From Pavona decussata (taxonomy: Eukaryota): a DNA stretch of 64,000 bases. Numbering within the stretch: the first letter of the stretch is position 1; every line of letters starts with the position of its first letter. The position numbers and the translations under genes are program-made. The stretch covers positions 2,604,001-2,668,000 of the forward strand of contig CDRNST010000090.1 in NCBI GenBank assembly GCA_977016875.1. Reading direction: 5' to 3'. The notes beneath the pieces were generated by a model. It saw only the letters and a program-made list of their open reading frames with translations. It did no database searches and had not been told where the DNA came from. This document shows positions 10,123 to 22,478 of the stretch, one piece after another.

Positions 10123-10903
10123 TTCCTAGATAAAAGACCATGCAAAGTGAGCTAAGCTTGCCACATGTAAGCTTATATGTTTAATTAAAATTGATTGCCA
10201 CTATGTTCCAGAAGAGTTTAGTAATTACAGGGGTAACTTTTCCATTCAATGAACCAAAATCCAAACTAAATATTTTGCGAATTCTCACATAGTTGAATTA
10301 AACACAATGGGATTCCCAATATATTAATTGGTGAAAACAAAGTAACAAAGGGGAAAAAAAGTTGTCATTTGTCATAGTATTTCATTGTCACTAGAGACAT
10401 TTTGAGATCAACCTTTGCCTCATCTCTCTTCTCAAGGAGGGCATGTCAGTATAAAAACAAAGCAGAAATAAATATCATCACTTGTGTATGTCTAAGGAGG
10501 TATTTTTTAAGCAGTCCACATTGTTTCAGTACTTTAGGTTCTCATCAAAAAGTACCTGATGAAAATCTGGATTCCTTCCTCTGCTAAGGTGCTCTGCAAA
10601 CTGAATGCAGTTGATCTTACTACTGTACTAGTGATGATGCAACATGCACAGTTTTGATTGAAAACGGAGAACTCTAAATTCTTTCTTTTAAATATTTCTT
10701 GTAATGACAGTAGATGTATAATTTTTCTTACCATGCAAGCGAACATCCCACAGTCATAGTTATTTTGTTGTACTGGAACTGCCTTTAAAAAAGAAATTTA
10801 CAAGACGTCAAGTATAAATATTTATTTAGTTATTTCTCGAAAAAAAAAATATTTTTTTTAAACACTGTAGGCCAAAGCAGTTTTATTTTTATGATTCTAT
10901 AAT

Positions 10904-11159
10904 CTGGGTGCAAAGAAAGTCAGTTTTACAGCTTGCCATCTGGGCAACCTGTGCTTTTAAGCGTGAACAAGCCCAAACTGAAGTCATTTCAACCAGCCCC
11001 AAAAACGTTTTGATGCACAGGATTGATTACACAGTTCTTCTTTCATTCTAATTCCTCAAAACCTTCACGTGCCTGTAGGGCCAGTTAAGAACAAAATTCA
11101 CTACCCAATAGCAAAATCCACTAGCCGGTGGCTATCAGATACTACTTTCTTTGCACCTG
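10904..11159. mobile_element. MITE with ~17-bp TIRs in a Ulp1 intron
   Basis: CTGGGTGCAAAGAAAGT ... ACTTTCTTTGCACCTG. TSD not resolved. Confidence 0.65.
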
Positions 11160-13079
11160 TAAAATATGTTGTTGGTAACCATTTAATAAAAATGATATTG
11201 ACATTGACATAACCATTCACTTAATATTATTGGTCAGTATAGTGCAAATCATTGTGCCTAGATCAACACAGATACAGAGGTGATTGTCAATGGATCATTA
11301 ACTGATCATGAGAAGTTACCCTGTACATTTGTTTAAGTTTCAATATTGTTTACCTTTGGTAGTTCATCCAACCAGTCCCCTTCATCGATGAATTGTCTCT
11401 TTCTCACCATTTCTTCCTTTAGAAAGCACCTTTAACATAGTATGCGTTAATTTTGATGTCTTTTTAATCTCTGTTAATAAATTATGACAATAGCAGTCAT
11501 AATATTAATGTTTATTGATGTTTTGCAAAAGAAGTTAAATCAATATTCTCACCTGATATTCTTAAGGAAGGCAGGAGAAATAATAATTTCTTTCAATCCC
11601 AGTATGATATTGTTTTTTGTGTGACATTCACAACCTACAGGTATGAATCAACATAGACTTTTTAAAGTGCAAACTCTATGGCCCAATGTAATTTGATTCT
11701 CATTGCTAATAAATATAACTTTTTTTTTCACGTTGTTTTATTATTTATTTGCACTGTTTATAACACTATATATTATATCTACATTAACGTACACTACTTA
11801 CATTACATATGTTACAATACAATGACACTAGTCAAATTAAATTACAGTTGATATGTTTACAATGACATTATTGTTTGTTTGTTAATTATTCGAGTCACTT
11901 ATAAGAATTTTGTTTTTTACTATATAGGGTGTTAATTTTCTAGAATTTAATAGAATATTAAATAAATAGGAAGCGAAAGCAAATAAATCAAAATACAAAA
12001 GCTTAAAAGAAACAAGAAAAGACACAATACAATTTTATAAAGACAGAAAAAATTTCCATTTGTTTCTGAATTCTTTCTCCTTATTAGAAGTGACTGCAAT
12101 ATATTTTTCCAGATTGATTTTTTCGCGCGCAAGTGAGACAAAATCATCGAATTGAGTTGTTATGGTATTTACAGCGTTAATATATAAGAAATATTTACCC
12201 AAAATAATGAGATGGTTTAGAGCTAAACAGTAAGTGTGACAGCGAGTAATTCCGAACATAACCTCTAGTTCTGACAGTAGCAGTTTCATATTACTAGAGA
12301 TTGAGTACCACTCCTGGAATTTATTCCAAAAAGAACTTGCGTGTGTGCAGTTTATAAACAGATGCCACAGGGTTTGACACTCAGAAGGACAAAAGGGACA
12401 GGAGGGTGAGGCGACTTTTTTCATTTTGTGTAACAAGCTATTCGTCGGTAATATGCAGTGAATCATTTTGTATTGGAACATCGTCAATTCAATTTCTCTC
12501 GTAGCTTTAAATGATAGGAGGTAGATTTTAGTCAAGCCATTTTCCTCGACGCCGGACGCTAAAAGTTTTTTCTCAGAAGTTGGTGGAGGTAGATCTTCAA
12601 GGTTAAGCAGCATACTGTATATTGTCTTGCATGTCAGTGAACAAATCAAGGTGGGAGGCGTAACTGGATCCATGGAACCTTCTTGCAATAGTTTCTTCCA
12701 ATTTTGGGGAATAGAAGAAATAATGCTATGATATTGTTAAAGGTGACATTTTACATTGAATTTATTGTAAAAGGAATTAAACGGGAGGAAATGGCCCTCA
12801 CAGGGGTCGAAAATGTCCTAGATTTGTTTTAATCCTGCATGATGCCAATGAGGAAAGAATACCATTTTCTTATTTACAATTAAAAATCGGTTGTTCCAGA
12901 TTGGTTGTGAGAGAACCTCATTTTTATTTTTAGGTGTGGCCTTTGTGATATCCTGCCAGTAAAAAATGATTTGTTTGTAGAAAGCAGGAAGATGGTTATC
13001 TAGGTCAAGGAGATCATAATCATAATTACATTTAAACAGTTTTGTGCCGCCAACATCGGCGAGGAGCGATTTTGGTATG

Positions 13080-19847: not shown

Positions 19848-20654
19848 TTCAAATGGATAACAAATATATTTGAACTACCATTGAGGCTGCGAAAACGAAA
19901 AGATACTACGAGCACATTTTTGGGGTGACCGCCATCTTTCATGCCTCGTCTAGTCCCCGCTAATAAATATAACTATCAATTATTGATTTTCTATAATATA
20001 GAAGCCTAATAAAAGAAACGCATACCCCAAGAGCCCAATGACAATGGAGATGTACTGGTATCAAAAGTAAGTCATAGTCTAGTACATTAATCTGCAAAAC
20101 AGATATAAGAAGGTTAACCAATATCTTTTTTGGAGTATTAGCTATTTTCCTACAAATCATGTATAAAACAGTACTTAAAAAATAGAGTCTGAGATATTGC
20201 TGCATCTTTTTGGTCCAGTTGGCCATCCACTTTGGCCCACACCTTGATAGCTTTTCATAGAAGAATGAATTGAAGCTGTAGACTCTTGGTAATGCTGAAG
20301 ACTAAACAGTAAAGGTAGACATCACAGTCAATCACATTTTATTAAGATTAAATATGGCGAAGGCAAAAACTGCTTTCCTGTATGTTTGACAACTAAGTTT
20401 TAATCATCATAAGTGCCTATTCTCATGCATTGGCATTATTGCCTAATTACAGTTTTTATAATAAGTAAACTAAGAATGCTCTTTATGTTAATTATAATGA
20501 TTTTAATACTTAAACAAGCTAATCTTACAAAGTCAAAGTACCCCTTGTGATCTCTGATTTATGAGCTCCATGTAAAAATTTATAAGCTGAAAGAAATGTA
20601 GAAATGAAATGAGACAGCAAAATATGCGTGCATTTTTTAATTTTATGCAATATA

Positions 20655-22478
20655 CTATGTACTTATTTCCCACTTCAAATATGGTAACCGTATCCCTTCT
20701 TCCAGGGTCACAAAGGGGAATTCAGCACTTGTGGAGAGCACGTCACCAGTAAGGATGGTTTGGGGAAATGTTATATGGTGCTGCTCTCCAATTTTTCGAA
20801 TGGCTGCTTTTATCTCTTCAAAGGACAATCTCTGGCCAGGAACACCCAAGGCTTTAGTTAGTGCTGAAGGTATTTGATCACCCACTCTTAAGACAGCTTC
20901 AATCATGCTTTTTGATATTTTCATTTTAGGTACACTTGCATGATGTAGCAGAAAAGTCACTGTTGCTAGTACACTGTTTCCATGATTAACTTTACAAAAT
21001 TGTAAACACTGCTGGTTGAGGGAACCGTAAATTACTTTTGTTGGCTGGTTTTGCTGGGTGGGCTGTTCATACTTAAACTGTGGACACGTCTCTGTTGGCT
21101 GCTCAGACTTAAACTGTGGACACAGCTGTTTTGGCTGCTCAAACTTAAACTGTGGACACGGCTTTGTTGGCTGCTCAGACTTAAACTGTGGACACGGATC
21201 TGTTGGCTGCTCAGACAAACTGTGGACCCCGCTGGGAAGGCTGTTGGAGCTTATTCTTTTGACTCAGGTGTAGATTTTTCAGTTAGTTGAACTGTGTATG
21301 TGGCTGTGTGGTCTGCTCTGAGAGTAGTTGTGAGTTATTATCAACCAGATCACGCCACTTTTTCTTACAAGGAGGTTGACTGTCCAATTTCATGCTACCA
21401 TATGCATCATGTTCTTCACCATTGCGAACCATGGGGACATCTGTGTCATCATTGTCACTGCCACTATTATTGCTCTCATCATCTGAAATGGATACATAGT
21501 GATTTTTGCAATTAAATGTACAAGCATTCTTTGATTCTTTACATGACTTGCCACTTTGCTTGTTTTAACTTGACTTTACTGAGTTTAAAGTGACTCTTTT
21601 CAAGATGGCTCTTTCTTTTTTTTGTAATTTAGCCGAAGTGGTAGTTTAGCATACTTTTTAGCGGCCCTCTGAGGAACTGCTTACAGTTAAGTTTGTCTTG
21701 AATTAAGTTTGATTTTTCCTTGGCTGGGCAACTTCCATAAAGATTTCATTTTCTGAAGGTACTTGTGCACCGAAACTGTTAAGGGCTTGGTGAAGATTTT
21801 GTTTTAATGAATTCACGGCAATTTCATCTGAAGAGGGATAGCTAAGGTCATGGATTTCTTTAAGTAGCTCCCTGCATCGTCTCCCCAAAGTCTGCTCCCT
21901 AATTATTGAATGCTGGTGTATTGTGGAAGTGTCAGTTTCTACTGCTGGAGTCTCAGCAACACTGTTCTGTGGTTCTTCTTCCTCTTCTTTTGTGCCATGT
22001 TCTCTCTGTTCGCTGAACAATGTATTGTGCCACAGATGCTTCAGATTGATCCATGTTTGAGGTAGAAGTCTCCAAATCAAAGGACAGATTAGTTACATCC
22101 TGGTCTACCTGGAAATAGCAACTGCTATTGTAGGAGGCGGACATTGCTTCTTATCCCCATTCAGGAAAGTAATGAAACACTGCTAAGAAATGCTTTCATG
22201 GCCAGTGATGCCCTTGCCAGTCTGGGCAACTACAGGAGGGCATTGTGTTGTCTTGACCAAATTGCAGGTTGTAAACACACGAGTTGTTAGTTTGACTCTT
22301 TATGGTGAAATGACGATCACCTTCCATTACTATGTCTGCTTTTTTTGTTGTACTTGCCTCTAATAGGCGGTGCTGGCAGTGCATGACAAACTGCCTGGGC
22401 CGATTTTGTAACCACTTGGGCAGAGCAACATTATACTGCCCATCCGTACTGGCTGAACGGATGTTACTTTCAATAGAC
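20655..22478 (-). pseudogene. C-terminal half of a MULE/Mutator-like transposase (SWIM zinc finger) and linker exons leading to the Ulp1 domain
   Basis: LPKWLQNRPRQFVMHC...F.IKS....Y.LQFG....PSCSCPDW.....(C>*)KHFLAVF is a SWIM CxC..CxH motif in the context seen in animal MULE transposases. Followed by a helical region and a repeat-containing exon. DDE core absent (truncated upstream). Confidence 0.7.
21057..21227 (-). repeat. 36-bp coding minisatellite (~4.5 copies) encoding (S/F/Y)EQPTxxCPQFK
   Basis: Unit TGTTGGCTGCTCAGACTTAAACTGTGGACACnnnnn, in frame in ORF 20655-21218. Confidence 0.95.

Follow-up and report, generated by a model that had tools for sequence, protein, structure and literature searches.

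Within a 64-kb stretch of the Pavona decussata genome (contig CDRNST010000090.1, positions 2,604,001 to 2,668,000, hereafter the window), a series of short exons resembling a SENP-type C48 (Ulp1) SUMO protease lies downstream of a transposase fragment that ends in a SWIM zinc finger. Is this protease part of a transposon, or is it a host SENP gene that lies beside a transposase remnant? Comparison with related copies indicates that window positions 9543 to 22567, on the minus strand, very probably represent a decayed member of a family of Mutator-like (MULE) DNA transposons that has lost its 5' part, and the protease is predicted to be transposon-borne and fused, not the product of a host SENP gene. 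We assign the protease to the element because the order SWIM, VTD, C48 recurs at other loci and because the exons are neither single-copy nor unlinked to a transposase. The initial annotation of this DNA had left room for exons that were single-copy or syntenic with a host SENP locus, or that were never accompanied by the transposase; they proved to be multi-copy and transposase-linked. Every feature of the SWIM/VTD/C48 element sits on the minus strand, and coordinates are window positions unless a locus is named.

The complete architecture can be read from the better-preserved copies. In these, one multi-exon gene encodes, in order, an N-terminal DNA-binding region, ALS2CR8, a ZSWIM1-3/MULE RNase-H-like DDE transposase, and the SWIM finger. 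The long exon that encodes the SWIM finger also encodes a VTD (herpes-tegument-like, C76) cysteine deubiquitinase, and it is followed by one linker exon and then by eight short exons (E1 to E8), which together form a SENP1-like C48 (Ulp1) protease. Of all this, the window copy has kept the SWIM exon and the linker, one half of the VTD domain, and E2 to E8 of the C48 exons, and nothing else. Its inactivating lesions are several: stop codons interrupt it, the VTD Cys is gone, 1 kb has been deleted, one splice donor is broken, one exon has a frameshift, and a nest of long interspersed nuclear elements (LINEs) has been inserted.

When the SWIM frame and the E3-E4 frame of the window were used as genome queries, matches were found on the same strand and ~3 kb apart at two further loci, C222 and C384. 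At both, ALS2CR8 is followed by ZSWIM1-3_RNaseH-like/MULE, SWIM, a long linker, VTD with its Cys and Asp-x-His, and finally the same eight C48 exons. The MULE-type transposase families scored above their cut-offs in C222, C384, and L057, a contig from another sample (PF10551, 33 bits; PF21056, 37-44 bits). These matches in the paralogues, together with ALS2CR8 and SWIM, bear out the earlier proposal that the SWIM piece derives from a MULE-type transposase. The VTD of C222 contains GKQC and FDPHAR, as does that of C384; PF04843 is matched at 27.9 bits (cut-off 25), and the C222 domain aligns with the zebrafish Helitron VTD structure (PDB entry 8add) with an E value of 9e-11.

From the linker onward, the window element has a copy at a third locus, C241, that is 84-90% identical to it in DNA sequence, introns included. 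C241 keeps the VTD-to-C48 order and is cut off upstream beside a retroelement integrase open reading frame (ORF). Fragments of the last two exons, E7-E8, lie at three more loci (C142, C132, and C213). Altogether, these C48 exons are present at no fewer than seven loci; VTD lies upstream at four, of which three have the SWIM exon as well. Contigs from other samples share this organization: L057 (a JGI metagenome contig) and L058 (a Logan run contig) in both, which are only 46-51% identical in protein, a VTD ORF precedes E1-E4, whose exon boundaries are unchanged, and L057 also has ALS2CR8 and MULE ORFs upstream. The linkage for which the initial annotation had suggested a genome search thus recurs, with SWIM joined to C48 at C222 and C384; VTD is joined to C48 at C241 and also on the two foreign contigs. 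When the Cys-exon motif Q.N..DCGMF was searched for as a degenerate DNA pattern, all hits in the 602-Mb genome were to five copies of this family, and none was to a host gene. One candidate host-type exon (L043, C67) has its acceptor 1 nt off that of E7, in a different phase, and is not informative.

To address the fusion, contigs from four runs of the same species were aligned to the C222 copy. An 816-nt contig from run X2 joins the exon ending at L022 position 5733 to 6157-6213 and then to 6838-6960 across GT..AG introns, a path that leads from the end of the SWIM-VTD exon through the 58-nt exon and E1 into the first bases of E2. Another contig exits E7 at its donor, and the sequence that follows resembles E8. 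Spliced contigs of this kind cannot demonstrate a full-length transcript. When the ten C222 exons were joined in a script, they gave a 942-codon frame with a single terminal stop, and all introns were canonical (AG/GT); the nine introns follow exon ends at L022 positions 5734, 6215, 6956, 7191, 7445, 7643, 8291, 8466, and 8692. Because of the spliced contig and the open 942-codon frame, we read SWIM, VTD, and C48 as one polypeptide, and their predicted product is a fusion protein. A fused protease had been suspected from the window alone, and the RNA-type contig, in which the VTD exon continues in frame across splice junctions into the C48 exons, agrees with that suspicion.

We then mapped the C48 exons of the window copy. 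Exon boundaries are an AG acceptor and a GT donor unless stated otherwise, and exon lengths were compared with those of the intact paralogue C222. Domain searches were run exon by exon, the joined model was used only in scripts for frame and stops, and the joined C222 tail was aligned to three contigs by local tblastn. Exon E2 (20542-20586; LINFYMELINQRSQG) has intact AG/GT boundaries. Exon E3 (20206-20301; FNSFFYEKL...NWTKK) ends at an AT donor mutated from GT; in C222, the same exon ends in AAG and is followed by GTGCGC, with GT intact. Exon E4 (20026-20091; IPVHLHCHWALG; IPVHLHCHW) is splice-bounded and encodes the catalytic His. The catalytic Asp lies in E5 (11553-11634; ISYWD), which measures 82 nt versus 83 in C222, with a 1-nt deletion directly after ISYWD that shifts the frame. 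Exon E6 (11354-11429; FLKEEMVRKRQFIDEGDWLDELPK) has a phase consistent with E5. Exon E7 (10732-10782; VQQNNYDCGMFACM; QQNNYDCGMF) is splice-bounded and supplies the oxyanion Gln and the catalytic Cys, and the last coding exon, E8 (10526-10600; FAEHLSRGRNPDFHQ...), ends in a stop, as E8 likewise ends the frame of C222. Exon lengths in C222 are 45/96/66/83/76/51, and those of the window are equal apart from E5.

The catalytic set of the window copy is thus in canonical order, with His in HLHCHW (E4), Asp in YWD (E5), and Gln and Cys in QQNNYDCG (E7), and the intact frame of C222 has these residues as well. Searched singly against Pfam Peptidase_C48, the window frames scored 20.9 bits for E3-E4 (cut-off 20.7) and 20.4 bits for E7, compared with 24.3 bits for E7 of C222. 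The best solved structure for the E3-E4 frame was human SENP1 (E 1.8e-7), with SENP5, SENP3, SENP2, and yeast Ulp1 weaker. These data are in agreement with the initial annotation of a SENP-type C48 domain with a His-Asp-Cys triad downstream of SWIM on the same strand. Its count of eight exons was one too high, as we find seven in the window, E1 (WLND) being deleted. The copy is dead, as had been stated, and both lesions given for it, the 1-nt deletion after YWD and the one damaged donor (E3, GT to AT), are present.

Upstream of the C48 exons, the remnant of the last transposase exon, with its SWIM zinc finger, spans 22085-22567 by alignment to paralogues and by Pfam SWIM. A stop-to-stop ORF at 22567-22199 ends in CSCPDWQGHHWP, the SWIM finger, which scored 16.9 bits against Pfam SWIM, below the cut-off of 19.6, versus 22.8 bits for C222. 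The remnant can be aligned to intact paralogues down to ~22085 only across two in-frame stops, one of which replaces the codon of the third zinc-ligand Cys, and its identity to the C222, C384, and C186 paralogues is 30-37%. No upstream transposase exons or catalytic domain were found anywhere in the 64-kb window. The linker that follows SWIM (21286-22092), identified by alignment to C222 and C384, is decayed, with several stops, and carries a family-conserved CRELLKEIHDLSY motif that also occurs in proteins P0002-P0005. Within the linker, 36-nt tandem repeats encoding SEQPTxxCPQFK lie at 21050-21243. In C241 (L026 2795-4487), the 36-nt linker repeat SEQPTQQCPQFK has grown to ~1.5 kb, with none of the three reading frames closed by a stop.

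The N-terminal half of a VTD deubiquitinase domain (Pfam Herpes_teg_N/MEROPS C76-like) follows at ~20691-21030, with 57% identity to the C222 VTD. Its catalytic Cys motif, GKQC, is replaced by HGNS, and the C-terminal half with the Asp-x-His is deleted. The junction of this deletion, 997 bp relative to C241, maps to 20688-20692 (at 20691/20692), and the missing segment comprised the VTD C-terminal half, the 58-nt linker exon, and E1. The VTD half-domain, the ~1-kb deletion, and the two SWIM stops had gone unnoticed in the initial annotation.

The intron between E4 and E5 contains an 8.2-kb nest of LINE fragments on the minus strand (11720-19958; RVT_1, Exo_endo_phos, and zf-RVT ORFs), flanked by a 15-bp target duplication, GTTATATTTATTAGC, at 19973-19959 and 11719-11705, with a poly(A) run at 11728-11720 beside it. 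C241 is uninterrupted exactly at this position and so represents the empty site. A LINE nest of this size splitting the exons had been described before, with boundaries right to within a few bases.

On the 3' side, a non-coding part common to C241 extends from 10525 to 9543 and contains a nested high-copy repeat of ~320 bp (9799-10121; 618 first-look candidates genome-wide) that C241 also has. This common nested repeat indicates that the two go back, through either transposition or segmental duplication, to a single copy that the repeat had already invaded. Between the window and C241, exons are 91.2% and introns 88.5% identical, and selection has left little trace after their divergence.

Evidence of mobility comes from other members of the family. 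The DDE exon gave 30 matches at no fewer than 14 dispersed loci, and many of the matches contain stop codons. At both ends of the C384 copy are ~100-bp inverted repeats of 95% identity, and their terminus, with a sharply defined start, is found again at eight other loci, half of which are collinear into the first transposase exons at 88-96% identity; one locus with this terminus is an internal-deletion derivative. Of the terminal inverted repeats and target-site duplications that had been proposed for checking, the repeats were found for the C384 subfamily and not for the window copy or C222. A candidate terminal-repeat pair in C222 (408602/424512) was discarded, as its motif also occurs in an unrelated contig end and is probably another repeat. 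The C384 terminus was sought in the window and at all other loci examined and was absent there.

Several of these observations weigh against a mobile element with a fused protease. Neither terminal repeats nor a target-site duplication was found for the window copy or C222, and the target-site duplication of the C384 copy (8-11 bp expected for a MULE) is unreadable, as the flanks differ and the outermost 18 nt are degenerate. Every inspectable copy of the subfamily has a lesion in the transposase catalytic region, namely a TAG in C222, a TAG in C384, and a frameshift in L057; the two in-frame TAGs, in the two best-preserved copies, differ (L022 2406-2408 and L024 612-614). Because all inspectable copies are lesioned in this region, no autonomous copy of the subfamily has been seen. 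The window/C241 pair, which has a common nested repeat and lacks the 5' part in both members, could be a segmental duplication of a dead copy. Finally, the runs behind the fusion evidence were only guessed to be RNA-type, and the support consists of spliced contigs, not reads.

With these points in mind, we considered other explanations for the locus. An ordinary, pseudogenised host SENP gene beside an unrelated SWIM transposase fragment would account for exons that are intron-rich and SENP1-like and for a window without a transposase catalytic domain, but it does not explain why SWIM-VTD-C48 recurs in that order at C222 and C384, and VTD-C48 at C241 and the two foreign contigs, nor why splicing in one contig joins the VTD exon to the C48 exons in frame and the Cys-exon motif is confined to copies of this family. 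We consider it very improbable. The combination of SWIM and Ulp1 also brings to mind Zisupton, a multi-exon fish element of the KDZ superfamily with both domains. The transposase exons of the paralogues, however, hit Pfam MULE and ZSWIM1-3_RNaseH-like above cut-offs, together with ALS2CR8, and no KDZ family was hit, so that an identity as Zisupton is scarcely credible.

The SWIM-VTD-C48 gene might instead be an emerging, or already domesticated, MULE-derived host family kept for its protease functions, with the window copy as a dead duplicate. Repeated domestication of VTD genes has been described by Erven et al. (PMC9741609). In keeping with domestication, the 942-codon SWIM-VTD-C48 frame of C222 is intact and expressed, while its DDE exon has the in-frame TAG; transposase-part lesions occur in C384 and L057 as well, and the C48 exons are 40-60% identical between subfamilies whose introns have diverged. 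Terminal inverted repeats, 88-96% identical copies, and an internal-deletion derivative nevertheless mark the C384 subfamily as a typical mobile family, many copies are truncated or stop-riddled, and the SWIM motif is lost in C384. On balance, domestication has a small chance of being the right explanation, and we retain the assignment of the window copy to a MULE transposon family.

How does this family compare with known systems? For hydra and lancelet, Repbase already contains Mutator/MuDR elements with a C-terminal Ulp1 (and PHD) (Bao, Kapitonov and Jurka 2010, PMC2836005). Like them, the window family joins an animal MULE transposase to a C48 protease; unlike them, its tail consists of VTD and a SENP1-like C48 in eight short exons, with no PHD finger. 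The initial annotation of an animal MULE with Ulp1 stands for the MULE linkage; its novelty was overstated. Protease-carrying MULEs are already known, and what is new is the tail of VTD and SENP1-like C48 on a MULE. The architecture cited for hydra and lancelet is found in sister copies of the same transposase family: C186, and by position also C407, C44, C65, and C83, all in the same genome, as well as protein P0004 from another assembly, have a divergent Ulp1 and PHD tail in the same exon as SWIM, without introns. In C186 (L033 2780-5224, minus strand; also P0004/L028), SWIM, the divergent Ulp1, and the PHD finger occupy one 815-codon exon. The sister PHD finger resembles H3K4me3 readers (PHF2, BPTF, and SPP1), and the sister-type C48 is too divergent to match any solved SENP. 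The genome holds at least 71 C48 matches, many within long transposon-like ORFs.

Erven et al. 2022 (PMC9741609) reported VTD deubiquitinases in Helentrons as well as in cnidarian fusions that they did not specify, and MULE, SWIM, and Ulp1 are unmentioned in that paper. The Helentron VTDs (PMC9741609; PDB 8add) belong to the same protease family, have the same Cys and Asp-x-His site, and are likewise carried by a DNA transposon, but the carrier here is a cut-and-paste MULE, not a rolling-circle Helentron, and the partner domain is a SENP-type C48 where that of Helentrons is OTU. Among plants, Kaonashi/KI-MULEs and CUMULE are Mutator-like elements with an Ulp1-like protease (Hoen 2006 and van Leeuwen 2007, as cited in PMC2836005); by description, they are set apart as plant lineages for which the literature cited here reports no VTD. 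Ginger1 (PMC2836005) similarly has a transposase with a C-terminal ubiquitin-like-modifier protease, and some copies have introns, but it belongs to a Gypsy-integrase-like superfamily and has either OTU or Ulp1, never two proteases. The C48 domain itself resembles host SENP1/SENP2, with a collinear catalytic domain and the motifs WLND-INFYM, FNSFF, WTKK, IPVHL..HW, YWDS, and Q.N..DCGMF. In contrast to these host genes, the C48 of the element is multi-copy and transposase-linked, lacks a host-type N-terminal region, and is shorter C-terminally, its frame ending ~18 codons after the Cys exon.

Where did the C48 part come from? It has eight introns in ~215 codons, much denser than the rest of the gene. 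This intron density and the collinearity with SENP1 fit the capture of a host SENP1/2 gene as genomic DNA, an origin that we regard as about evenly balanced between true and false. Should introns of the SENP part and of the host gene prove to lie at the same positions, the family would clearly exemplify, in an animal, DNA-level host-gene capture by a MULE in which the captured gene was kept functional.

Separately, the genome contains a second, independent two-protease cassette, consisting of single-exon ORFs with VTD and a SENP7-like C48. These lie in C92 (L030 4878-6332, minus strand), C6 (L031 4779-6101, minus strand, with a THAP-like frame nearby), and C51 (L029 5138-6202, plus strand). 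We considered this cassette as the source of the C48 exons and rejected it, as its C48 is SENP7-like, not SENP1-like.

Ginger, Helitron, plant and animal MULE, and Zisupton transposons have repeatedly acquired proteases that act on ubiquitin-like modifiers, and to our knowledge nobody has demonstrated the benefit of these proteases to their transposons. In the family described here, the transposase would most likely bring the two isopeptidases to chromatin or to itself; at chromatin, ubiquitin/NEDD8 and SUMO would be stripped from the transposase itself or from host repair or silencing factors, favouring transposition. A role in counter-silencing or counter-restriction is plausible, if somewhat short of probable. 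Stabilisation of the transposase or management of repair seems rather unlikely, and self-processing of the fusion protein distinctly so. A fuller scenario, which we find doubtful as a whole, is that a MULE lineage swapped its ancestral Ulp1-PHD tail for VTD and a SENP1-type deSUMOylase taken as host SENP1/2 genomic DNA, introns included; delivered to chromatin, this tail would erase ubiquitin- or SUMO-dependent silencing or restriction marks, and the protease part of C222 may be nearing domestication.

The family is of interest in that a single transposase polypeptide bears two proteases, one ubiquitin-type and the other SUMO-type, and the sister subfamily with its Ulp1-PHD tail provides a natural comparison within the same genome. 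The window copy itself is only a fossil, and C222 offers a protease reading frame that is intact by nature and so open to expression and assay.

Finally, we noted other features in the neighbourhood of the element. Just upstream of the SWIM remnant, at 23891-25555 on the minus strand, lies the remnant of a different element, a P-element/THAP9-like transposase with the Tnp_P_element helix-turn-helix, the N-terminal part of a TNP-like RNase H, and a GTP-binding insertion. Between the SWIM and P-element remnants, an ORF on the plus strand (22790-23195) has weak HIRAN-like similarity (E 0.056). Also on the minus strand, a frame at 27380-27625 resembles, by eye only, the C terminus of a Pif1/Helitron-type helicase, and frames at 28686-29036 resemble, again by eye only, a retroelement polymerase.

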